From Amoebophrya sp. A120 (lineage: Eukaryota > Protista > Dinoflagellata), in contig CAJINV010000005.1 in NCBI GenBank assembly GCA_905178155.1, positions 8,533,591 to 8,597,590 of the forward strand: a stretch of DNA of 64,000 bases. The letters are read 5' to 3'. The translations under genes were made by a program, and so were the position numbers. The notes below the pieces were generated by a model that was not told where the DNA came from, did no database searches, and saw only the letters and a list, made by a program, of their open reading frames with translations. Below are positions 12,960 through 27,500 of the stretch, in pieces; position 1 is the first letter of the stretch, and every line of letters starts with the position of its first letter.

Positions 12960-13452
12960 TGTTTTTAAGGAACTCTGAGTCAAGTAGAGCTACATGTTTT
13001 GAAGGAACTCTGAGTCAAGTAGAGCTACATGTTTTGAAGGAACTCTGAGTCAAGTAGAGCTACATGTTTTGAAGGAACTCTGAGTCCTCAAGTAGAGCTC
13101 TAGTGTAAGATGAACTTCTTCATTGTGTAAGATTGACCACAGACAGATTTTACCTATGCACATGTTTTGAAGGAACTCTGAGTCCTCAAGTAGAGCTCTA
13201 GTGTAAGATGAACTTCTTCATTGTGTAAGATTGACCACAGAAAGATTTTACCTATGCACATGTTTTGAAGGAACTCTGAGTCCTCAAGTAGAGCTCTAGT
13301 GTAAGATGAACTTCTTCATTGTGTAAGATTGACCACAGAAAGATTTTACCTATGCACATGTTTTGAAGGAACTCTGAGTCCTCAAGTAGAGCTCTAGTGT
13401 AAGATGAACTTCTTCATTGTGTAAGATTGACCACAGAAAGATTTTACCTATG
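12960..13452. repeat. Compound tandem repeat: 3 x 35 bp, then 4 x 98 bp
   Basis: Unit tgttttgaaggaactctgagtc(ct)caagtagagc; 98-bp units start at 13063, 13161, 13259 and 13357. Confidence 0.9.
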
Positions 13453-14759: not shown

Positions 14760-15616
14760 ACCGGCCTAGAATTTTTCCGAAACCGGCCAAGAATTTTTTT
14801 CGTCTTCGAGCCACCTGCGCCCGCTTCCCACCCGTCCTCAGCCGTAAAAACAGTAATTTTTCATTTTTTCCGGGCAATTTGCAAGGTGGAAGGCTGGCCA
14901 TTTTTTCGAAATCGGCCTAAGTTTTTTTTTCGTCTTCACACCCACCTGCGCCCGCTACCCACCCGTCCTCAGCCGTAAAAGCAGTAATTTTTCATTCTTC
15001 CCGGGCAATTTGCAAGGGGGGACGCTGGCCATTTTTCCAAAATTGGCCTAAGTTTTTTTTTCGTTTTAGACCCACCTGCGCCCGCTACCCACCCGCCCTC
15101 AGCCGTAAAAGCAGTAATTTTTCATTTTTTCCGGGCAATTTGCCAGGAGGAAGGCTGGCCATTTTTCCAAAATTGGCCTAAGTTTTTTTTTCGTCTTACC
15201 CATCTGCGCCCGCTACCCACCCGTCCTCAGCCGTAAAAGTAGTAACTTTTCATTTTTTCCGGGCAATTTTCAAGGGGGGACGCTGACTTTTCCAAAATTG
15301 GCCTAAGTTTTTTTTTCTTCTTGCCCACCTGCGCCCGCTACCCACCTGTCCTCAGCCGTAAAAGCAGTAATTTTTCATTTTTTCCGGGAAATTTGCAAGG
15401 CTGGCCATTTTTCCTAAATTGGCCTAAGTTGTTTTTTCGTCTTACCCACCTGCGCCCGCTACCCACCCGTCCTCAGCCGTAAAAACAATATTTTATTTTT
15501 CATTTTTTCCGGGCAATTTGCAGGGGGGAAGGCTGGCCATTTTTTCGAAACTGGCCTAAGTTTTTTTTTCGTCTTACCCACCTGCGCCCGCTACCCACCC
15601 GTCCTCAGCCGTAAAA
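14760..15616. repeat. ~120-132-bp tandem satellite, left part (~7 units), interrupted by the YR retrotransposon
   Basis: Unit core cccacctgcgcccgctacccacccgtcctcagccgtaaaagcagtaatttttcatttttt. Confidence 0.92.
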
Positions 15617-16189
15617 TCGTAAAACTAGATCTCTGTGTTGAAATTTTACTGAGAGAGAGTGATCGACGAGCGCGCTAAGGGCACAGACGTTGATGGCAGT
15701 AGAGTCTTTGACTCACGTTTCGATTTTAGCTGCCCAGTTCACAACGAGGTGGATAGCGACACCTCCCTCTGAGCTGAACAGTCTTCCCAGGTCCAGACCT
15801 GTTGGCGAGTTCTTTTCCTCTACACTCAGTCGTGTTCCAGAGGCAGTCTTTGACCTGGCGGTGATAGTTCTCGCCAGACAGGTCTTTAGTTCTGTTTGGT
15901 TTGAGCGCGCTAAGGAGCGGAGGCGCGAGTTCTCGTGCGACAAAATTCTCACCCGCAGCTTCATTCGTGAAGCTCTTTCCGCTCGGACTAAGGGTCACAG
16001 CGCATTTGCGAGTTTGAGATCGAGAGATCAGTAAAATCGTAAAACTAGATCTCTGTGTTGAAATTTTACTGAGAGAGAGTGATCGACGAGCGCGCTAAGG
16101 GCACAGACGTTGATGGCAGTAGAGTCTTTGACTCACATTTCGATTTTCCCACCCATTCGATCTTTCAGATCCCTCCCTTTTTCAACAAG

Positions 16190-17671
16190 ATGTCTTGGGT
16201 TGACGCTGCTCTCGCTGCCCCGCAGCAGTATGCTCACCAGGCGGGGATGTCAGCAGTCATCCAGTCCCGTCCGAATACGCACAAGATTCTGATGAAACAA
16301 AAGTCCTCATCAGCATCATCTCGGCAACGGAGTGCGTCCGATTTTCAAGCCAGATCGACTCCGTACGATTCCTTCCAACGCCCACGAGCAGCATCATCGG
16401 ATGAAGCATTCGCCGCAGCAGTTGCAGCTTGCAGCGACGCAGAACTACTCAAGGACGACTTCTTCCCACCAGATCCATACAACTCTAGTCCGAAAAAACC
16501 AGCAACATTCCCAGCAGGGTTTTTCACCGAGATGGCGCCTCACCCGAAGATGTTACGACTCTTCCGTGACGCTATGGATCCAGCGAAAACCAAGAAGTCC
16601 TCCCAGAAGTCACAAGCTCTCGCTCTTGCATCAAACTACCCGCGACTCGCAGCAGCGAAAGAGAAGATCACTGCACGTCCTGCGAACCTCACGGAAGACG
16701 CAAGACTGAAGTGCTACTTCCAAATTTGTCATGCAGCTGGACAGCACCCCAAGTCCTCCCACCTTCTCAAGCCGTGGCCCATTACGCGGGACCACGCTCT
16801 GACATTTTTCACCGCGCTTGTCGGCGACACCCCGACAAAGTCGTTTTACACGACGGCGGATGATTATTTATGGTCTGTTATTGCCAGGCTTGAGGCAATT
16901 CCGGGGGGGAGCACCTTGGGGAAGGCGGGCAAGACTTTCATTTCGCAGACGGTCGCACGCCAGAAGCGGGCCGGTATGTTCCAGCATACCCAGCCACCAG
17001 CAGTGCAGTTGGAAGAAGTTCTCGAGCTCGTTAACCTCGAGCACAACAAGAAATACCAATTCGCAGCTGCGTGCGCAATTGGTTTTTTGTTCGGGCTACG
17101 AAAGTCGACTCTGGTCAACAAAATTAGTTTCGGCCTGGAAGACGAATTTCTGCTGCACCACTCCCACTACGACCTCGACGATTCCCCATCCGATGTGGAG
17201 GACGGTGGCTCCATCGAGGAACAGATGCAGACTCACCACATCGCCTCACGACATAACAACACCTACCACAAGTTTTCCGGCGACTTCTCGTATAACGAGG
17301 CGGCCGAGGTCTTTTGTCTAAATTTAGACAAACACGTTTTGAAGTCGAACTTCATACGCAAGGTGTACGTGTGCTGCCTGTGCAGAAATGAAGACTCGTG
17401 TACACTGTGTCCACACAATTTATTGCCTCTGTTGGACGACAACTCCACAGATTGGCGGTCTAATTTCGTGACCGATTTCAAAGCGTTTTTCGGCACTGCC
17501 AGGACGCAGAGTTTGCGCATAGGGTGTCTACAACACCTTATGCGGTGTAAAGTCTCCAGTAGCCGCGTAGGCTGTCACTTACGCTGGCAAACGGCAAGTA
17601 TGATCGAGTACTACAACAGAGGAAACAAGTACGCCTTCAACAAATTTGCTGGTGTTAGTTTCATTCCTTGA
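16190..17671 (+). CDS. Tyrosine recombinase of the YR retrotransposon
   Basis: GFLFGLRKS (catalytic R), TQSLRIG (HxxR box with H replaced by Q), HLRWQTASMIEYY (RW...Y). First ATG at 16190 within ORF 16079-17671. Confidence 0.85.
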   Translation: MSWVDAALAAPQQYAHQAGMSAVIQSRPNTHKILMKQKSSSASSRQRSASDFQARSTPYDSFQRPRAASSDEAFAAAVAACSDAELLKDDFFPPDPYNSSPKKPATFPAGFFTEMAPHPKMLRLFRDAMDPAKTKKSSQKSQALALASNYPRLAAAKEKITARPANLTEDARLKCYFQICHAAGQHPKSSHLLKPWPITRDHALTFFTALVGDTPTKSFYTTADDYLWSVIARLEAIPGGSTLGKAGKTFISQTVARQKRAGMFQHTQPPAVQLEEVLELVNLEHNKKYQFAAACAIGFLFGLRKSTLVNKISFGLEDEFLLHHSHYDLDDSPSDVEDGGSIEEQMQTHHIASRHNNTYHKFSGDFSYNEAAEVFCLNLDKHVLKSNFIRKVYVCCLCRNEDSCTLCPHNLLPLLDDNSTDWRSNFVTDFKAFFGTARTQSLRIGCLQHLMRCKVSSSRVGCHLRWQTASMIEYYNRGNKYAFNKFAGVSFIP

Positions 17672-17785
17672 ACGATCATGGAAAAAGTCTCTTGCTACAT
17701 ATTTCGCTCTCATCTGGCCGCGTGCATAGTTTCACGCCGTGTTCCACCAGAAGTCTTGAGAGAGTCTTCCTGACAAAAAGTCAGA

Positions 17786-20191
17786 GTGCCCGATAGTTTC
17801 GAGCGAGTTTTCAAAGCCGACACTCACATATCAAATTTCTCGAGCGAACCCGGCGAAGTTCAGTCACAAAAGAGGGCAAGCGCCTTCCTTCATGAGAGTT
17901 TTTCTTTTCACGCTGTCATGTGCCAACTTCCACACACTATTAGACAAGCTAATCAAGGATTATTCATCATGATGAACGACGGTGCTTTCGCCGCTCTCGG
18001 CGCGATGGCCGGCCCGGGCGCAGGAGTGCTCGGCGGCAACGTCCCGCTGCCCATCATTCCGCCGGGACACGTGATCCCCGTCGTCCACCCGAAAGTCGGT
18101 GTGGCGAATCCCAAAGTCGGAAAAGCCAACCAGAAAGCGGCCGCCCCGAAGCCGCGCGGCCTGTTCCCGCATGGACCGAAAGCTCCGGCGGCACCGCCAG
18201 TCGCCCCCGTCGTGCACGGGCCGAAAGCCCCGGCTGCAGTCCCAGCTCCCCCAGTTTTCCCGGGTTCAGGTGACCCGGCAGGAGCAGGAGCAGGAGGTGG
18301 ACATGTCTCTCCAAAAGCGAAAGCAGCTGCCCCAGCAGGTGCACCGCCAGCAGGTGGACCGGTGGGTCCAGTCGCCCCGCCAGTCGTCCCGATCGCACCG
18401 ATCGCTCCGCCGGCAGCACCGGTCGCACCAGTCGCTCCAGTAGTGGCACCACCAGCCGCACCCCCGATCGCAGTTGCGCCGGCCCCAGCTCCGGTTGCCC
18501 CAGCGGCACCAGCGGTACCGGCACCAGCGGCACCGGCACCAGTTTTTCCGGCGATCCCCGCGGTCCCAGTGGCACCCGTAGTCGGCCCGCCAGTGGCGCC
18601 ACCAGTCGCCCCAGTCGCACCACCATTTGCACCGATGGCAGCACCAGCTGCTGGTCCAGCTCCGGCCCCGGGTGCGCCGCCATTTTTCGCACCGGGAGGT
18701 GTTGCGGGCGCACCGGCAGCGCCAGCACCCGCAGGTGGAGCGGCAGCTCCGGCCCCGGCAGGTGGCGCGGCAGCACCACCAGCGGCAGTACCAATAGGTG
18801 CACCATTCTTCCCACCGGGCATGCCACAATTTGACCCAGCCTGGTTGCAGATGCACGGTAACCTCTACTTCCAACAGCTGATGAGCCAGAACATGTACAT
18901 GCAGCAGCAGAGCCAGTACATGCAGCACATGATGCAAAATCAGGCTGCCCTGCATCAAGGGTTCGCCGGCTTCGCAGACGCGTACGGCAACGCAAACCCG
19001 GGCAGGGATGATCCGTTCCATCCGGATGCGCCAGTTACCGAAAATGAAACCCGTGCTTTTGCGTGCGCCAACGACGAGATCCCGAAGTCCGACAGGATCG
19101 CGCTGGATTCACACCGGACGATCAACACGTTGACTCGCGACCGCGCGATCCACACCGCCGTGAGCGCCGGGGTGAAATACACGCACCGTAGTCAGGTGCA
19201 AGTAAAGGACACGAAAGCCCTGAAGAACACGTACCCGCCCAAACCAACCACTTTGTTGCGGTGCCTCGCCGTCGGCGGGAAAGTTGACCCCGTCTTCGCC
19301 TCCGCGGAAGAAGCAAACAAAGTAGTTGTGTTCTACGAGGATTTGTGCAAGGCGAAACCAGAACAAGCGAAAGTGGAAGATTGGGAAGCACTAGTGTCGG
19401 ACAAGTTCTACGAAGTGCTCGCTACGTCCTGCGATTCGCTCGCGCCCGACCGCGAGACGCTGCACAACGGCCAGTTAGTGGACACAACTTATCAAGAACG
19501 GATCCGCTACTTCTTCGTCGCACCGGAGTCCGACGTGAACGGCTTCAAATGCAAGCTGAGCACGCTCATCCAGATTACCCACCAGATGGGCGCCACGTTC
19601 AACAACACGAACATGCAGAACATCATGGGCATCAGTACTCCATTCGCCGGCGGCGTCAACACGTCCAACCGCGAACGAACCCCCAGGCGCACAGGGGATT
19701 CTTCTACCACCAACAACCAGCAGTCGGGGGATAAGTTTGTCTTGTGTTGGCACTTTTGTAAGTGTACTCCGTGTTCGAATGACACGTGGTATCGCGATGA
19801 CGGTAGCATCGTTTGCTCTGCGGGATTGCATCCGATGTTGAAGTCCGAGATGTCCAAAGGCCAGTTCAAACGCGTAAAACGCACCCAGATGGGTCGCGTG
19901 GGTCTGAAGGACACCGGCTACTTCTCGTGGGTCGACGATGCTACCGGCGAGTACAAGGGAGACAGTCTGAAAAAGTATTTCCCCGACCGCGGTTCCGCTT
20001 CATCAAAGAAGGGGAAGGGCAAGAAAGGGAAACAGTCTTCTTCTTCTTCCAAGTCCAATGTCCAGCAAGAAGTGTCTTCTTCCAGCAGTGAGGAGGAGGA
20101 AGATGAAAAGGAGAAAAAGAAGAAGAAGTCGAAGTCCATGAAAACTACCCCGGCCACGGGAACAGCCGCTTCCAGCAGTGCTGGGCCGTAG
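17786..20191 (+). CDS. Gag-like ORF of the YR retrotransposon (Pro/Ala-rich, Gln/Met-rich, Cys/His motif, Lys/Ser/Glu tail)
   Basis: 801-aa ORF inside the element; CCCH-like motif CWHFCKCTPC...C...H; the gag assignment is positional; the true start is probably an ATG near 17918-17970. Confidence 0.65.
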   Translation: MPDSFERVFKADTHISNFSSEPGEVQSQKRASAFLHESFSFHAVMCQLPHTIRQANQGLFIMMNDGAFAALGAMAGPGAGVLGGNVPLPIIPPGHVIPVVHPKVGVANPKVGKANQKAAAPKPRGLFPHGPKAPAAPPVAPVVHGPKAPAAVPAPPVFPGSGDPAGAGAGGGHVSPKAKAAAPAGAPPAGGPVGPVAPPVVPIAPIAPPAAPVAPVAPVVAPPAAPPIAVAPAPAPVAPAAPAVPAPAAPAPVFPAIPAVPVAPVVGPPVAPPVAPVAPPFAPMAAPAAGPAPAPGAPPFFAPGGVAGAPAAPAPAGGAAAPAPAGGAAAPPAAVPIGAPFFPPGMPQFDPAWLQMHGNLYFQQLMSQNMYMQQQSQYMQHMMQNQAALHQGFAGFADAYGNANPGRDDPFHPDAPVTENETRAFACANDEIPKSDRIALDSHRTINTLTRDRAIHTAVSAGVKYTHRSQVQVKDTKALKNTYPPKPTTLLRCLAVGGKVDPVFASAEEANKVVVFYEDLCKAKPEQAKVEDWEALVSDKFYEVLATSCDSLAPDRETLHNGQLVDTTYQERIRYFFVAPESDVNGFKCKLSTLIQITHQMGATFNNTNMQNIMGISTPFAGGVNTSNRERTPRRTGDSSTTNNQQSGDKFVLCWHFCKCTPCSNDTWYRDDGSIVCSAGLHPMLKSEMSKGQFKRVKRTQMGRVGLKDTGYFSWVDDATGEYKGDSLKKYFPDRGSASSKKGKGKKGKQSSSSSKSNVQQEVSSSSSEEEEDEKEKKKKKSKSMKTTPATGTAASSSAGP

Positions 20192-20670
20192 TCGTCTCAT
20201 CAATCAGTACACAGTATTTTTTGTCCGCAGGACACAAAAGTTTTTGTCAAATCAAGTATTCATTTATCAATAGATTTCAGTTTGATTTTCCATCTATGGA
20301 TTGTTTGTCAAAAAACGCACCATCAACTACCCACCTGTTTAGAATTTGTTTTTATGCCAAGAATAATCAAAAAATGTCTATCATCCCACTTTCTTCTCTG
20401 GAAGCAGAGTCATACTTCTTCCCTATGCACAGGGTCGTAGTTTCTTCTCCGGCCGCGGAGTCGTATTTTCTTCTCTGCATGCAGAGTCGTATTTCCCTTC
20501 TGGAAACAGAACACTCTCGCTGAAGTTTCAGCCATTCTTGTTGCAAAGCAACATTGCATCGCCCGTACATTGAATAAATTTCCACGTTTTCCATGAAAAA
20601 AAATGAAAAATTAAAAAACATCAACGCCGGAGTTACGCCGATCCGCCGGAGTGTCTCTTCGTCTTCCTGA

Positions 20671-23181
20671 GTGCGACGAGAAAGTTCACGCACAGTCTTT
20701 CAGGAGAGATTCTTCGAGAGACATTTTGCGTCGTTGTTGTTGCTGGTGTCGTCATTCTTTGTCCCACCAGACAGCATGAAGCGTTTTTCGGACTATCTGT
20801 GCCCTGCACGGCACTCACAAGATGACGTGTTTCTCCCCCAGTCCGAGTCTGAGGCTACTCCCCAGGAAGAGGCCGACTACAGGAAGAAGTGGGAGCAGAT
20901 GGTGCAGCGGGTCGAGCAGGATTTACGGAAAAAGTCCCCGTTTGAGCCGATCTCAAACGACTTCCGCTGCGTCGACACAGGGAAGTTATTCTCCACCGAC
21001 GTGATTGCCGAAATCGACAAGATGAACGCTGCGTCGGCTGCCCGCGACATCGCTCGCAAAAAGCAGATGTGCAGCGAAATCCACGCTTTTCACGGCAAGT
21101 ACAACGTCGGTTTTCTGGCTACTGCGATGGAAGCAGCAGGCGCGGAGGACCAAGAGTGCGTTGACGAGGTATTAGTACAGGGCGGCACATGCATAGGTGA
21201 CTGCATGGCGCCCAGTTGTTGGGGACCGCCTTCCTCCAGGAGGAAGCCGTGGTTCGTCACGACAGAACCTCCGTTCAACCTGGACCAGTACAAGACCGGG
21301 ACCCCGCCCCCCGACTGGCCAGAGGCGCACATAAGAGAGATTTTTGCGCAGACCCAGGAGGAAGTCAACGTCGAGCCCCTCCTCGGTCATCCACGGATCC
21401 GCCCCGGTATCACCTACCGACAGGCGAAGAAGGCGAAGTGGAAGCATGTCTGGAGGCGGTTTTGTGTTGAACAAAAAACGAAGATCCGCATGATCGACCC
21501 CGCCTGTGCATGCAACGCCCGCAGTGACCTGTCGAAGGGCGTCCCGATGGGGTCGGCGCAGGAGATCCTGGGGTCGTGTGCAGTCCTGAAGGACCCCAGC
21601 CTCCGCGACCAGAACTTCGTTTCCTTCACCAAGCGGATTGTGAAGAAAGGTCGCTCCCTCGAGAAGGAATACGAGGACGCCTTTGTGCAGTTCATCGAAG
21701 ATGGTACGCCAATCCCTTCGCACCTGAAGAAGCCTTCCAAGGAGTACCATGCAGCCGCTGACGCGAACGTCACTGCCGCCGGGGAACCAGATCCCAAGCG
21801 GCACAAGATGTTTCCGGCCACGTTGCTCCAGCTTCTCATGCTTGTGATAGATGTACATAAAGCTTACAATACGATTGCGGTGCGTCCGTCTCATCGGAAG
21901 TTCAATCGGTTTTGTGTGTACGATTTACAGCAGTCGAAGTACATGTTTTACGAGGCCCTCACCCTTATTTTCGGTAATGTACATTCAGTTGTGTGTTGGG
22001 TTCGTATTTCTATGGCCATAAAAGCTGTCATTGTGTTTTTTGTGCAGATTATGCTCAGCGTTTATGTAGACGACTTCGCCTCTCCTGTGCCCGAGTCTGT
22101 CGGTGAGAAGGCCAAAGAAGCTGTTTTACATGTTTTTCGGACACTTGTGTTTAGTGTGCATCCAAACAAAGTTAAACTTGCACCTATCACAGAGGTTTTA
22201 GGTCTGATTTTCGACCTCGCGGTCGAGGTGCCGGAGTTTTATGTTTCTGTCCAGCGCCAAGAGTCTATCTCCATCATCATCTCCAAGGCTATCGAGGCGT
22301 CGCACCTGGCAGGGGACGTTGCTGAGACATTACACGGAAAAGTAATGCTCTGCTTATCATCCTTGGTCGACAGACGTTACAGCCCGCTCCTCAAGCCCCT
22401 GGCACAGTACGTGCACCACCCCACCCAGCACGGGAAGCCACTGTCTCCCAAGCTGGTCCAGTGTTTGGAGAACGTGCGGACTATTCTCGCGGCTGGCATC
22501 CGCAAGCGAGCACAGTTCGAGGTCCCCACAGCGGACAATGTCATGTTGTACACGGACGCCTCGTACAGTCACGGCTCCGGTTGGCTTTCTGCGATTCTCG
22601 CGATCGGTACATCACTGTTTGCCAGAAGGATCCGGGTCGAGGAAGCGGACCTTCCCGACACCATCCCGAAGTCGCATCCGATTTCCTACCTGGAAGTCGT
22701 GGCGCCGGTGCTCGCGGTGAACGAGTTCAAGTCCAAGTTGCAAGAGAAGTCGCATTTTCGGCTCAGCGTCGACAACGACAGCGCTAAGTGCGCCCTGCTG
22801 AACCAGAACTCCCCTCTGCAGCACATGGCGACGCAGGCGCTGTTCTTCTGGTCGTTGTGCAGTACGTTCTGTCTGTCCCCGTGGGTCGACCGAGTCCCCA
22901 CCGGGTTCAATCCAGCAGATGTTCCGACGCGTTCGCGGTTTTTGTATTTCGTTGTGAACAACTTCCCAGGCGCGTTCCAAGAACTTTCCGCCTTCTCGGA
23001 AGAGACATCGAAGTTGTTGCATCCGGCTCTCCACATGTCAAGTCCAGATCTTTTCGGGGTGTTGCCAGGAGTAACTCTCGACCATTATTTTGACGCTAGT
23101 ACATGGTGCAAAAAGTCAGACAAGTTTTTGAAAGATGATGATGTTTCCATGGTAGATCACGTGTTAGAGTTGTCTCAGTAG
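20671..23181 (+). CDS. Reverse transcriptase-RNase H of DIRS/Ngaro type
   Basis: RT: KIRMID, IDVHKAY, LIFG, YVDDF, EVLGLIFD. RNase H: LYTDAS, ISYLE, VDNDSA, RVPTGFNPADVPTR. Confidence 0.93.
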   Translation: MRRESSRTVFQERFFERHFASLLLLVSSFFVPPDSMKRFSDYLCPARHSQDDVFLPQSESEATPQEEADYRKKWEQMVQRVEQDLRKKSPFEPISNDFRCVDTGKLFSTDVIAEIDKMNAASAARDIARKKQMCSEIHAFHGKYNVGFLATAMEAAGAEDQECVDEVLVQGGTCIGDCMAPSCWGPPSSRRKPWFVTTEPPFNLDQYKTGTPPPDWPEAHIREIFAQTQEEVNVEPLLGHPRIRPGITYRQAKKAKWKHVWRRFCVEQKTKIRMIDPACACNARSDLSKGVPMGSAQEILGSCAVLKDPSLRDQNFVSFTKRIVKKGRSLEKEYEDAFVQFIEDGTPIPSHLKKPSKEYHAAADANVTAAGEPDPKRHKMFPATLLQLLMLVIDVHKAYNTIAVRPSHRKFNRFCVYDLQQSKYMFYEALTLIFGNVHSVVCWVRISMAIKAVIVFFVQIMLSVYVDDFASPVPESVGEKAKEAVLHVFRTLVFSVHPNKVKLAPITEVLGLIFDLAVEVPEFYVSVQRQESISIIISKAIEASHLAGDVAETLHGKVMLCLSSLVDRRYSPLLKPLAQYVHHPTQHGKPLSPKLVQCLENVRTILAAGIRKRAQFEVPTADNVMLYTDASYSHGSGWLSAILAIGTSLFARRIRVEEADLPDTIPKSHPISYLEVVAPVLAVNEFKSKLQEKSHFRLSVDNDSAKCALLNQNSPLQHMATQALFFWSLCSTFCLSPWVDRVPTGFNPADVPTRSRFLYFVVNNFPGAFQELSAFSEETSKLLHPALHMSSPDLFGVLPGVTLDHYFDASTWCKKSDKFLKDDDVSMVDHVLELSQ

Positions 23182-23483
23182 TTTCATACATTCTTTTTTC
23201 GCTCGATTATTCTGCCGCACGGCTGAGTGCCACATTCTTGTGCGTTGCGCTGTTCGACCTAGGCTATCGGTTCGCTCCGCGATACCATACATAGCCTTTG
23301 GATACATTCGGGTCTCCTGTGTATCGGTTGATGAGTTCTCGTCTTCCGAGCGCGCTTTATGCCCAGGAGCTGTCGGCACGAGTTCTCGTGCGACAAAATT
23401 CTCACCCGCAGCTTCATTCGTGAAGCTCTTTCCGCTCGGACTAAGGGTCACAGCGCATTTGCGAGTTTGAGATCGAGAGATCA

Positions 23484-23790
23484 GTAAAAGCAGTAATTTT
23501 TCATTTTTTCCGGGAAATTTGCAAGGGGGAAGGCTAGCCATTTTTCCAAAATTGGCCTAAGTTTTTTTTTCGTCTTACCCATCTGCGCCCGCTACCCACC
23601 CGTCCTCAGCCGTAAAAACAGTAATTTTTCATTTTTTCCGGGCAATTTGCAAGGGGAACGCTGGCCATTTTCCCAAAATTGGCCTAAGTTTTCTTTTCGT
23701 CTTGCCCACCTGCGCCCGCTACCCACCCGTCCTCAGCCGTAAAAACAGCAAGTTTTAATTTTTTCCGAGCAATTCGCTGGCAATTTTTCC
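23484..23790. repeat. ~127-bp tandem satellite, right part (~2.5 units)
   Basis: Continues the 14760-15616 array: gtaaaa|gcagtaatttttcatttttt. Confidence 0.9.
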
Positions 23791-24540: not shown

Positions 24541-27500
24541 ATGATGCTTCAACTCCTGCTCTGGGCCCCCAGCATGGTGCTCATCGCGTTCTTCTTGTCC
24601 CTCGGCCACGACCTTGTGTATCCTGAGTAAAAGCGTCCCCACCCCAGAGTTGTCATGCAGATTTTCAGTCACAGGAAGATTTGTAATGCGCATCTCCACG
24701 AGAGCAATTTTCAATTGTGTTTTGGACTTTCTAATGCCCTAAACAGGATGAGTAGATGGATTTGCGTTGCGGCTGTACTTGCTAAAAAACTGCACTTTAC
24801 AATACAGAGACGAACTTGTCACGCTTGATTCCCAAAACTTCTCGACTTGTGTTGCGAGATCCCCATCTTGACTCTGGGGTGGGGACGTTTTTGCTCAGGA
24901 TATTGTGGCGGGTATAATCACGACGGCGGGAGTTCTTGTCCTAGTTGCAGTCTTCAAGAACCAGGCGCGGTTCGTTTCTAGTACGGAAGTAGAGGACATT
25001 TTTCGGCAAACGTGGTGCGGAGACGGAAAACGTGGTGAAGGAGAAGGAAACGGTGGTGGAAAAAATAACGGTAGCATATGGATTGCAAAAATGTCTGGGT
25101 CTGGAAACCTGTGATGCAAGGAAGGGAAGAGCGAGCACTCTGTGATGCGCTGCCCAGCATGACAAGTTTTTCCGTGGTTCTGAGTTGCGTACTCCGCATA
25201 AGAAGCCGCGTTTTTGTATGACAGAGAAGAGGACCTCTTCGCGGGCACGCAATACAGAGTTTAGAGTCATGCCAGACTAGCATGACAAGTCTCAGAATCT
25301 TCCAGACCCAGACACTTTTGCATTTGATATAGCAGCGGAATAAACGGTAGCAGCGGAAACGGTGGTGGACACGCTAGCGGCGGAAATAACGGTGGCGGTG
25401 AAGACTGTGGTGGCGGTGAAGACTGTGGCGGCGGAAACGGTTTCACCCCCACGCCGATCAATGCTGACAGGTACTATGAGGGCAACGAGCGCACAAACGG
25501 GCGAACCGTCAGACAGATCGTTGCGAACCTGCGTGGCGTTATGATGGGTGCAAACCCAAACGCTGCAAAAGTAGATGAGCGAGGGCATCGACAAAGTCAA
25601 AGCGGCCTGCCGGCTTGTAGCATTGTGTACCTTGCGGGCGACTCTTGGATGGATGTCTCGCACTATCTACGTGGAAACAGACGAAAGGAAGCACGGCAAC
25701 CTGCCAAATACCTACGACAAGTTTATGCCGTACCTGAAGCCAGACGTGCTGTATTATCTCTCGAAATTATTCCACGACAGCACCACGACCACCGACAGTA
25801 GAGATGTTGACAAGAACAGCTCGTCCACCTCGTCCTGGCACTACACCCAATGCGTGATGGCTGCGCAAGCGGGCTCAATCTTGCGAGGCCGCACGGTGCC
25901 CGGCGGTCCAAACGTGCTCGCAAACGACGTCGCGATTCGGGACACCGTATCAAATGTAAAAATGTCTGGGTCTGGAAGATTAGAACTTGTCATGCTAAAT
26001 CTGAATGATGCAAAAATCAAAATCTGTGTTGCGTGAGTGCCAAAAGCTGGCCGCTTTTGACCAAGGTGAGAGGGAGTTTCTCATGCAGGAAAGGCATGAT
26101 AGAGACCTCAAAGAATCTGTCATGCTGGGTCTCGCATTCCAGACCTCACGCGTCATGGAAAACCTGCATCACAAATCTTGCACTCTTCCAGACCCAGACA
26201 CTTTTGCATTTGATACACCGTGACGGAGCACGACCGCATCGTGGTGCACGTCTCGGGGAATGACATGAACAGCATTTTTAAGCAAGTTTTGCGCGGCAAG
26301 GGTTGCGTAGCGATCGTCAAATATCCTGTGTAAAAACGTCCCCACCCCATAGTCAAGTTGGTAAATCTGCAACACAAATCTCCAAGTTTTGGGAGTTTTG
26401 CATGACAAGTTTCCATCTGTAGCGTCGTGCTGTTTAGCAAGGGCAGCCGCATGAGAAAGCCAGCCTCTCATTCTGTTTACAGCATTACAAAGTCCAAAAC
26501 ACGATTGGAAATGCCTCTCATGCAGATCCATATTACAAATGTTCCTGTCAATGCACATTTGCATGACAACTCTGGGGTGGGGATGTTTTTACCCAGGATA
26601 TCAAAGGAATTGTGACTGGGTCTTTGAAGCAAGAAACGATCGAGGCACTTAGAATCCTGTGGCAGGAAAATTTTCCGAGATACCTGAAATTTTTGACCGA
26701 GAACAAAAAGCCGAGGGAGATCATCGTGCTCTCACAACCCATCACGCGCCCTGGCTACGTGAAGCGCCTCGTCTCCCGCAAGGTTCCCGGAGGCCGAAAC
26801 ATACCGTCATTTCTCCTGTCGGGCTTGTTTTGGGCTGTGAATCAGTTCTTCAGCGGCTTGCACCTCGACGGCTTTCCGGTGTTGCGGGATACAGTGAACG
26901 AAATTCAGAATGGAAACCCCGAACTGCAAGGGATTCGAATCTATCCACTGCAAAAGTTACTAGCACCGCGCTGCTCGTACTGTAGCCTGTCGCCAAGACA
27001 CCTAGACAGCCATATGTCGAGGGCCTTTTCCGGCCAGTGTCTTTGATTTCGGTCTTTGGGAAAGTATTTGAGATTCTTCTGGATAGGAGACTCAACATTT
27101 TTTTGGAAGGTCATTCCTGGGACGGCCCAAAAGTGCTTCCAAAATTGAGCGAGCCTGTGCTGCCGATTAACTCGGTGGCCTACAGGCTAGCTTTCTTCAA
27201 AGAGATGAGCGCGGCGAAGATTCTCAGCCACCTGTTCACCAGCCACAAGACACCAAGCGGAGAAAGCATCAAGAAAAAATGGTTACTGTTGAATGACAAT
27301 GAGGCAGGGTTCGATGTAGTTAGGCATTTGACAACGATAGAAATAATGAAGGAACTGAAGGTGCCGGAAGACATCACTTTTGCAACACTGGACTGGATGC
27401 ATGGAAGAAAATTGAAGATAAAAACAGGAAAAAACACATGGAATCTTTCTCCTGGCATGCCCCAAGGCTCGCCGTATAGTGGTGGAGTCTTTAACGTGCA

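Follow-up and report, generated by a model that had tools for sequence, protein, structure and literature searches.

We analysed a window of 64,000 nucleotides from the dinoflagellate Amoebophrya sp. A120 (GenBank assembly GCA_905178155.1, contig CAJINV010000005.1, positions 8,533,591 to 8,597,590 of the forward strand), which contains a candidate tyrosine-recombinase (YR) retrotransposon at window positions 15611-23489. The repeat finder and the list of open reading frames (ORFs) place its parts in the 5′ to 3′ order A1 - spacer Y - B1A2 - ORF1 - ORF2 - ORF3 - B2, where A and B are two split direct repeats. The A repeat comprises 117 nucleotides (15611-15727 and 16031-16147) and the B repeat 115 nucleotides (15922-16036 and 23375-23489), as determined with the repeat finder. 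Exactly one mismatch distinguishes A1 from A2 (G/A in CTCACGTTT/CTCACATTT), and likewise B1 from B2 (GGCGCG/GGCACG). At the internal junction B1 and A2 overlap by the six nucleotides GTAAAA (16031-16036), and the identical six nucleotides open A1 and close B2. Three long and intact frames are open on the + strand (16079-17671, 17786-20191 and 20671-23181), with likely conserved ATG starts at 16190 for ORF1, 17969 for ORF2 and 20776 for ORF3, and each of the three proteins can be aligned end to end with intact relatives.

Organization of the element and its insertion site

The features of the element and of its flanks are as follows.

14771..15616, no strand: left part of the ~128-bp host satellite, given as context (Tandem Repeats Finder (TRF), period 125-130, 6.6 copies)
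15611..15727, + strand: A1, the 5′ terminal repeat; the opening 6 nt (GTAAAA) are common to the target and the B end, and 15643-15652 form the right arm of the junction inverted repeat
15728..15921, + strand: spacer Y of the leader, with a near-invariant block and hairpins (alignment of 6 families, RNAalifold)
15922..16036, + strand: B1, internal copy of the 3′ terminal repeat (repeat finder)
16028..16072, + strand: inverted repeat across the B-A junction, with TCAGTAAAAT at 16028-16037, a 25-nt loop and ATTTTACTGA at 16063-16072; the core GTAAAA lies in the left arm
16031..16147, + strand: A2, internal copy of the 5′ terminal repeat; the conserved CCCACCC begins at 16148
16190..17671, + strand: ORF1, predicted tyrosine recombinase of 493 aa (conserved ATG; frame open from 16079)
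17969..20191, + strand: ORF2, 'gag-like' by position (alignment of 6 families)
20776..23181, + strand: ORF3, reverse transcriptase (RT) and RNase H (YVDD, TDAS..E..D..D, weak RVT_1 match)
23182..23374, + strand: 3′ untranslated region (3′-UTR), with conserved blocks, a GGCTAT..ATAGCC hairpin at 23262-23296 and GAGCGCGCT at 23348
23375..23489, + strand: B2, the 3′ terminal repeat; its end TCAGTAAAA (23481-23489) equals the left arm of the inverted repeat, and its last 6 nt are common to the target
23484..23774, no strand: right part of the interrupted satellite, given as context (repeat finder, TRF)

In line with a preliminary description of this DNA, the part order, the open + strand frames and the repeat differences of about one base were thus recovered with the repeat finder, the ORF list and pairwise comparison. 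The conclusion drawn there, that the insertion is recent because the repeats differ by one base, carries little weight, since in the published model split direct repeats are not re-synchronised like long terminal repeats (LTRs), and since the family is single-copy. The only inverted-repeat pair reported between 14000 and 25000, located at 24619-24902, lies outside the element, indicating that terminal inverted repeats are absent. Moreover, the motif GAGCGCGCT occurs four times, at 15668 in A1, at 15903 just before B1, at 16088 in A2 and at 23348 just before B2; its position ahead of both B copies indicates that the similarity there extends past the scored repeat, with an indel.

The element interrupts a host satellite, a family with nine copies across both flanks. 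The uninterrupted monomer reads CCTCAGCC-GTAAAA-GCAGTAATT and contains a single GTAAAA; hence, the insertion neither duplicated nor removed target bases. As the neighbouring monomers represent the exact empty site, conservative, duplication-free recombination at the short shared core, here of 6 nt, can be read directly from the two flanks. In the seven families considered below, the bases shared by junction and target are GTAAAA, AAAA, AATCGC (one mismatch), AAA, AAATCAC, AAAT and AAA, with AAA common to the shared core in all seven. Insertions in satellites account for two of the seven.

Several further observations concern the target. In the window element and in family L055, the A repeat opens with two direct copies of the core, 8 nt apart (GTAAAA-TC-GTAAAA at 15611-15624 and AATCAC-T-AATCAC, respectively); both families rank among the three in which core and target match over the greatest length. 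The distant recombinase-first element L057 (C4:5464501-5474500) likewise resides in a tandem array, which has a 31-bp period on both flanks. Contig C222 was considered as a second insertion of the window family and rejected, because its identical satellite flank indicates the same locus assembled twice.

The encoded proteins

A disordered stretch at the N-terminus of ORF1 precedes a helical, core-binding-like domain and a catalytic domain. When ten relatives are aligned, R142, K223, R281, R303-W304 and Y312 are invariant and position 278 is either H or Q; the invariant R, K, (H/Q)xxR, RW and Y correspond to the catalytic set of tyrosine recombinases. Pfam gave no match for the window protein itself, and a sequence profile of ORF1 found nothing useful in the PDB. 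A distant member of the ORF1 family matches PF00589 at the catalytic box (E 0.01, profile positions 116-168 of 172), and in the protein atlas PF00589 is present in 14 of 30 ORF1 neighbours. An AlphaFold2 (AF2) model of residues 200-530, built from 10 sequences, reached a predicted local distance difference test score (pLDDT) of 69.8; a model of the whole ORF1 from 7 sequences was unusable (pLDDT 40.5) and was discarded. With the former, the top Foldseek matches were exclusively Cre, Tre, lambda Int or Xer. VIA-align superimposed it on Cre with a Z score of 12.1 over 244 residues, spanning both domains, and on the catalytic domain of P2 integrase with a Z score of 9.9 and a root-mean-square deviation of 3.0; its top 47 rows belong to the tyrosine recombinase superfamily, after which the scores fall to Z 4. 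Taken together, ORF1 is, as judged from its conserved residues and its predicted fold, a two-domain tyrosine recombinase. In Pfam searches, none of the three ORFs matched a DDE integrase (rve).

The genome also contains recombinase-like ORFs of 334-440 aa that are 25-31% identical to the retrotransposon recombinases and have no RT match nearby among the listed hits (C26:164827-165696, C3:8439899, C3:9949020, C3:9942378, C3:6570240, C13:2012798, C6:4430869 and C156:1756). These may represent Crypton-type DNA elements or domesticated recombinases.

ORF3 comprises a conserved N-terminal domain, a reverse transcriptase with the motif YVDD and an RNase H with the signature TDAS..E..D..D. In the alignment with its relatives, neither the YVDD motif nor any of the RNase H residues D629, E675, D701 and D750 varies. 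Database representatives at E<=1e-30 number 366, and six of 13 relatives match RVT_1, one of them with an E value of 9.7e-8. The C-terminus lies ~80 residues past RNase H and gave no further Pfam match, so that a methyltransferase is absent. Correspondingly, Pfam detected no methyltransferase, DNA methyltransferase (DNMT) or DDE integrase domain in ORF3 and no DNMT in its 12 relatives. A protease in the N-terminal part of ORF3 was considered and rejected, as the DTG at about residue 100 is not kept in the relatives.

The alignment of 6 families divides ORF2 into a Pro/Ala-rich N-terminus, a conserved central domain, a CWHFxKCxPCxN..C..GLHP motif and a charged tail. ORF2 and ORF3 are separated by a gap of 585 nt, which contains degenerate 26-bp tandem repeats at 20390-20510. 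The wide spacing of the three ORFs gave rise to the idea that they might be expressed through spliced-leader trans-splicing, by analogy with the kinetoplastid hosts of VIPER and TATE.

Related families, known elements and the conserved leader

Genome searches with ORF3 and ORF1 yielded six related elements in full. The repeat layout was counted in the window family and these six fully read families; thirteen further elements and a family with a 780-aa RT stand outside this count. The plan A1-Y-B1A2-YR-ORF2-RT/RNase H-B2 is present in 6/6 of the further families and thus, with the window element, in seven of seven, at protein identities to the window element of 24-63%; in one of the six the RT is only 23-28% identical. 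Decayed copies of two of the six families were also recovered, one of which (L029) has retained the whole A1-Y-B1A2 leader, while the other (L058) has retained A1 and spacer Y, followed by an internal deletion. The preliminary description had proposed to collect genomic copies and to look for A1-B1A2 at the 5′ end; six further families and two decayed copies with the leader indicate that it is not a one-off. In the thirteen further elements, identified by paired coordinates, the recombinase is located 3.6-5 kb upstream of the RT on the same strand, so that this arrangement holds for about 20 of 20 paired elements.

The nearest RT relatives derive from Amoebophrya A25, AT5.2 and marine metagenomes, and word-index protein searches with RT and recombinase profiles returned no relatives other than those from Amoebophrya and metagenomes. 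When 20 RT relatives were looked up in their clusters, Amoebophrya, Perkinsus and Symbiodinium were the only named members, with no DIRS, Ngaro or VIPER references among them. An internal FastTree analysis separated the Amoebophrya-type sequences from ~110 more distant RT/RNase H proteins, in a tree that holds no named DIRS, Ngaro or VIPER references. A scan of metagenome contigs yielded one 1.3-kb fragment. Taken together, these data very probably identify the segment 15611-23489 as an intact, single-copy, autonomous tyrosine-recombinase retrotransposon of the DIRS order in the wide sense, one of the many divergent families, each low in copy number, that make up an assemblage in Amoebophrya and in marine protists related to it.

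Two observations stand beside this assemblage. The family with the 780-aa RT, in which the RT is the last ORF, has at least five copies that are 99.9-100% identical over ~3.65 kb (L030-L034, at C1:7291922, C1:11519011, C4:228995, C5:3595631 and C112:177); the shared sequence terminates in ...GAAACGAAA, on AAA again, and there is no B copy within 808 bp upstream of the RT. It may be the most recently active retroelement of this kind in the genome. In addition, an isolated relic of ~170 bp at C15:1921747-1921916 is 71-74% identical to the A/Y part of the leader, with no listed ORF match alongside.

Membership in the DIRS order in the wide sense follows from the tyrosine recombinase, RT and RNase H, the split direct repeats with an internal junction and the lack of a target-site duplication. 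The distinction from Ngaro, VIPER, PAT and SymbioDIRS is based on described layouts and domains and not on a tree with named references. According to the preliminary description, VIPER and TATE have the gene order gag-YR-RT/RNase H. They resemble the Amoebophrya element in their three separate ORFs, the recombinase upstream of RT/RNase H, the split direct repeats, the lack of a methyltransferase and a gag-like ORF without a recognisable domain. Their third ORF encodes RT/RNase H, A1 is located 5′, and B1, A2 and B2 lie at the 3′ end; TATE moreover inserts at one position of a tandem repeat, the telomeric hexamers (PMC6681497), reminiscent of the satellite location of the Amoebophrya element. 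In the latter, however, the recombinase precedes ORF2, the junction lies 5′, and the host is Amoebophrya rather than a kinetoplastid, that is, a member of a different eukaryotic supergroup.

Ngaro elements (e.g. DrNgaro1; Goodwin & Poulter 2004, summarised in PMC4157794) likewise combine a tyrosine recombinase with RT/RNase H and A1..B1A2..B2 split direct repeats, and lack a methyltransferase and a target duplication. However, they read gag-RT/RNase H-YR with the internal junction downstream of the recombinase, whereas the Amoebophrya element is recombinase-first with the junction ahead of all ORFs. The PAT group (Pat1 forms of nematodes and echinoderms, kangaroo, TOC3) shares the split direct repeats, and a 'translocation' of the junction is a known change in it: among PAT forms the place of the internal junction varies while staying after the RT (PMC4157794). 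These elements carry a putative methyltransferase, their recombinase is downstream of the RT or inverted, and in the described forms the junction is never upstream of all ORFs. DIRS1-like elements, likewise with a putative methyltransferase behind RNase H, combine inverted terminal repeats (ITRs) with an internal complementary region (ICR). The absence of a methyltransferase and of terminal inverted repeats, together with a junction located 5′ and not after the RT, separates the Amoebophrya element from DIRS1-like and PAT elements alike.

The elements termed SymbioDIRS-Dnmt3 of Symbiodinium (de Mendoza et al. 2018, PMC5890265) have in common with ours a dinoflagellate host, an RT too divergent for Pfam seeds, A and B repeats and, in one of two structures, swapped integrase and Pol ORFs. 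A recombinase preceding Pol is therefore not new in dinoflagellates. In contrast to our element, which has no Dnmt3 in ORF3 and a junction 5′ of the coding region, theirs carry Dnmt3 in Pol and have the repeat order A-coding-B-A-B. Thus, of the novelty that the preliminary description had seen in gene order and layout, the junction upstream of all ORFs stands as undescribed in the literature searched, whereas the recombinase-before-Pol order has a precedent in SymbioDIRS-Dnmt3 (PMC5890265). An element that combines a structured leader and a 5′ junction with a recombinase ahead of every other ORF is unreported in the literature searched, Repbase lying outside that search. This combination broadens the spectrum of gene orders and junction positions known for the DIRS order.

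A curated library such as Repbase might hold alveolate DIRS-like entries of the same order and layout, so that the family would already be described. Perkinsus marinus is on record as a host of DIRS1-like elements (PMC3266345), a swapped integrase/Pol order has been published for DIRS elements of Symbiodinium (PMC5890265), and Perkinsus and Symbiodinium proteins are among the RT/RNase H relatives. We nevertheless regard this as unlikely, given that LTR and non-LTR types are the only retro-elements mentioned in the genome paper on Amoebophrya (PMC7789003), that the Symbiodinium elements are drawn as A-coding-B-A-B (PMC5890265) and that layout reviews place the junction only downstream of the RT.

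The leader itself is under constraint. Its Y block at 15747-15775 is near-invariant and comprises an AGGTG..CACCT hairpin followed by CCCTCTGAGCT; further downstream lie a CCTC/GAGG hairpin (15817-15843) and GACCTG..CAGGTC repeats (~15796-15885). In the alignment of 6 families the near-invariant blocks read AGGTG.GT.GCGACACCTCCCTCTGAGCT, GACCTGTTGGYGA (twice) and CAACAGGTC, and they are better conserved than the coding DNA, which is ~65-67% identical in the families compared. RNAalifold and pair counts support the leader hairpins: 90% of the cells are paired versus 31-53% in slid controls, 11 pairs show compensatory changes and none of 500 shuffles scored as high. The divergence of each leader parallels that of the element to which it belongs. 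Furthermore, TTTTCCCACCC directly follows A2, and not A1, in every family, and the 3′-UTR contains conserved blocks and a covarying hairpin.

The location of TTTTCCCACCC after A2 only, purine-rich stretches ahead of B1 and the recurrence of GAGCGCGCT within both A copies and ahead of both B copies could also suggest an LTR-like organization. B and A would then form one unit, B1A2 being the complete 5′ unit with the promoter, followed by a putative primer-site-like CCCACCC; A1-Y and B2 would be the halves of a second unit, split when a circle with two junctions integrated, and the working mRNA would start in A2, with the leader merely carried along. An RNA started in A2 could, however, not transmit A1-Y-B1, although these parts are conserved and co-diverge per family, and we consider the LTR-like organization as a whole quite improbable.

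Very improbable in our view is the alternative given in the preliminary description, a non-autonomous 420-bp A..B mini-element head-to-tail with a 7.46-kb A..B element to which the leader would be foreign: each unit would indeed be bounded by A..B and by the same core, and TATE of Leishmania is reported in tandem arrays (PMC6681497), but the leader accompanies the element in seven of seven families and two decayed copies, leaders co-diverge each with their own element, Y blocks are more conserved than coding DNA and contain hairpins with compensatory changes, and genome searches with three leaders found no stand-alone mini-element.

The B-A junction and a possible mode of integration

When B2 is joined to A1 via the shared core, a perfect inverted repeat with arms of 9-12 bp and a loop of 24-27 nt arises in all seven families. 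The arms are family-specific and covarying (TCAGTAAAAT, GATTGTAAAAT, GAAGAAAAA, CAGAAAAAT and ATGAATAAA), and the crossover core is located in the left arm. The arm length was reached in 0-1 of 500 shuffles per family, and for the window element, with an arm of 10, in none of 500. As judged from these comparisons between families, selection acts on the leader, the 3′-UTR and the symmetry of the junction.

Integron attC sites place the recombination junction inside an inverted repeat, which folds into a stem holding the crossover. The likeness of our element to Cre/loxP and integrons, namely the two-domain Cre fold predicted for ORF1 and a junction in a potentially foldable inverted repeat, is a functional analogy only; in contrast to lox-type sites, 24-27 nt separate the arms, one of which contains the crossover core.

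We propose that a full-length RNA would extend from A1 to B2 and that the internal B1A2 junction would bring the ends of the cDNA together, as envisaged in the published model for split direct repeats (cited in PMC6681497). Alternatively, the B2 end might pair with the complementary arm ~30 nt inside A1. The joined B.A junction would then serve as an attP-like site, which ORF1 would recombine conservatively with an AAA-containing target. If a circle carried two B.A junctions and integrated through the 'other' one, A1-X-B1A2-Y-B2 would turn into the present plan; the 5′ internal junction would thus be a circular permutation of the Ngaro/PAT/VIPER plan, fixed in the lineage, and as a consequence Y would act in cis as a 5′ leader instead of forming a 3′ tail. 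The identical layout in seven of seven families implies that the choice of the junction is not random. What the preliminary description had called a 'mirror-image' repeat layout is, according to this scheme, better seen as the ordinary split-direct-repeat plan in circularly permuted form; where the junction lies is known to vary among PAT forms (PMC4157794).

A more radical possibility is that the folded single strand of the covarying B2.A1 inverted repeat is the true recombination substrate, which we consider doubtful. Here, the 3′ end of the cDNA (or RNA) would pair with the arm ~30 nt inside A1 and cyclise the molecule, and the resulting short duplex, holding the AAA crossover, would be recombined with a duplex target by the Cre-like enzyme. 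If true, this would explain why an end-derived and never an internal junction integrates, and hence the fixation of the permuted layout in every family; it would also constitute a eukaryotic counterpart of integron attC or of CTX-phage single-strand integration.

Several points weigh against our interpretation of the element as an intact, autonomous retrotransposon that moves by way of such a junction. First, the internal B1A2 copy lacks the inverted-repeat symmetry in three of the seven families (L053, L055 and L057), which fits poorly with the internal junction as the only template for the ends. All four point changes in these families are in the internal B1A2, while the terminal B2+A1 inverted repeat is perfect; with only four changed positions, this asymmetry is suggestive and not significant. 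Second, the circular or single-stranded intermediate is a putative one. Third, no reads fell on 15300-21299 in three raw RNA runs, which are small and in which the presence of the strain is uncertain; one 153-nt contig, from a run of uncertain kind, falls in ORF3. Fourth, the window family has one genomic copy, and recent movement of the element is therefore not demonstrated. Finally, the proteins are divergent: the RVT_1 match of ORF3 (E 3e-5) is below the Pfam curated cut-off, its RT profile found no match in the PDB by sequence, and ORF2 has no gag homology detectable with Pfam or the PDB, where only low-complexity matches appeared. The term 'gag-like' used for ORF2 in the preliminary description is thus justified by position and by the conserved Cys/His motif, but not by homology.

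Tyrosine-recombinase retrotransposons are the least understood order of retroelements, and how their ends are rebuilt and which junction integrates is still a paper model. Many divergent, intact, low-copy families with one permuted plan provide natural covariation data on the leader hairpins, the 3′-UTR hairpin and the junction inverted repeat, and they offer concrete mutable sites for distinguishing the circle model from the single-strand model.

Two repeats were noted elsewhere in the window. A 98-bp tandem repeat with 4 copies, 99% matching, occupies 13062-13452 and adjoins a 35-bp repeat. Just downstream of the satellite, the pair at 24619-24902 consists of 32-nt inverted repeats that are 94% complementary and 220 nt apart, and it may represent a small element with terminal inverted repeats or an introner.

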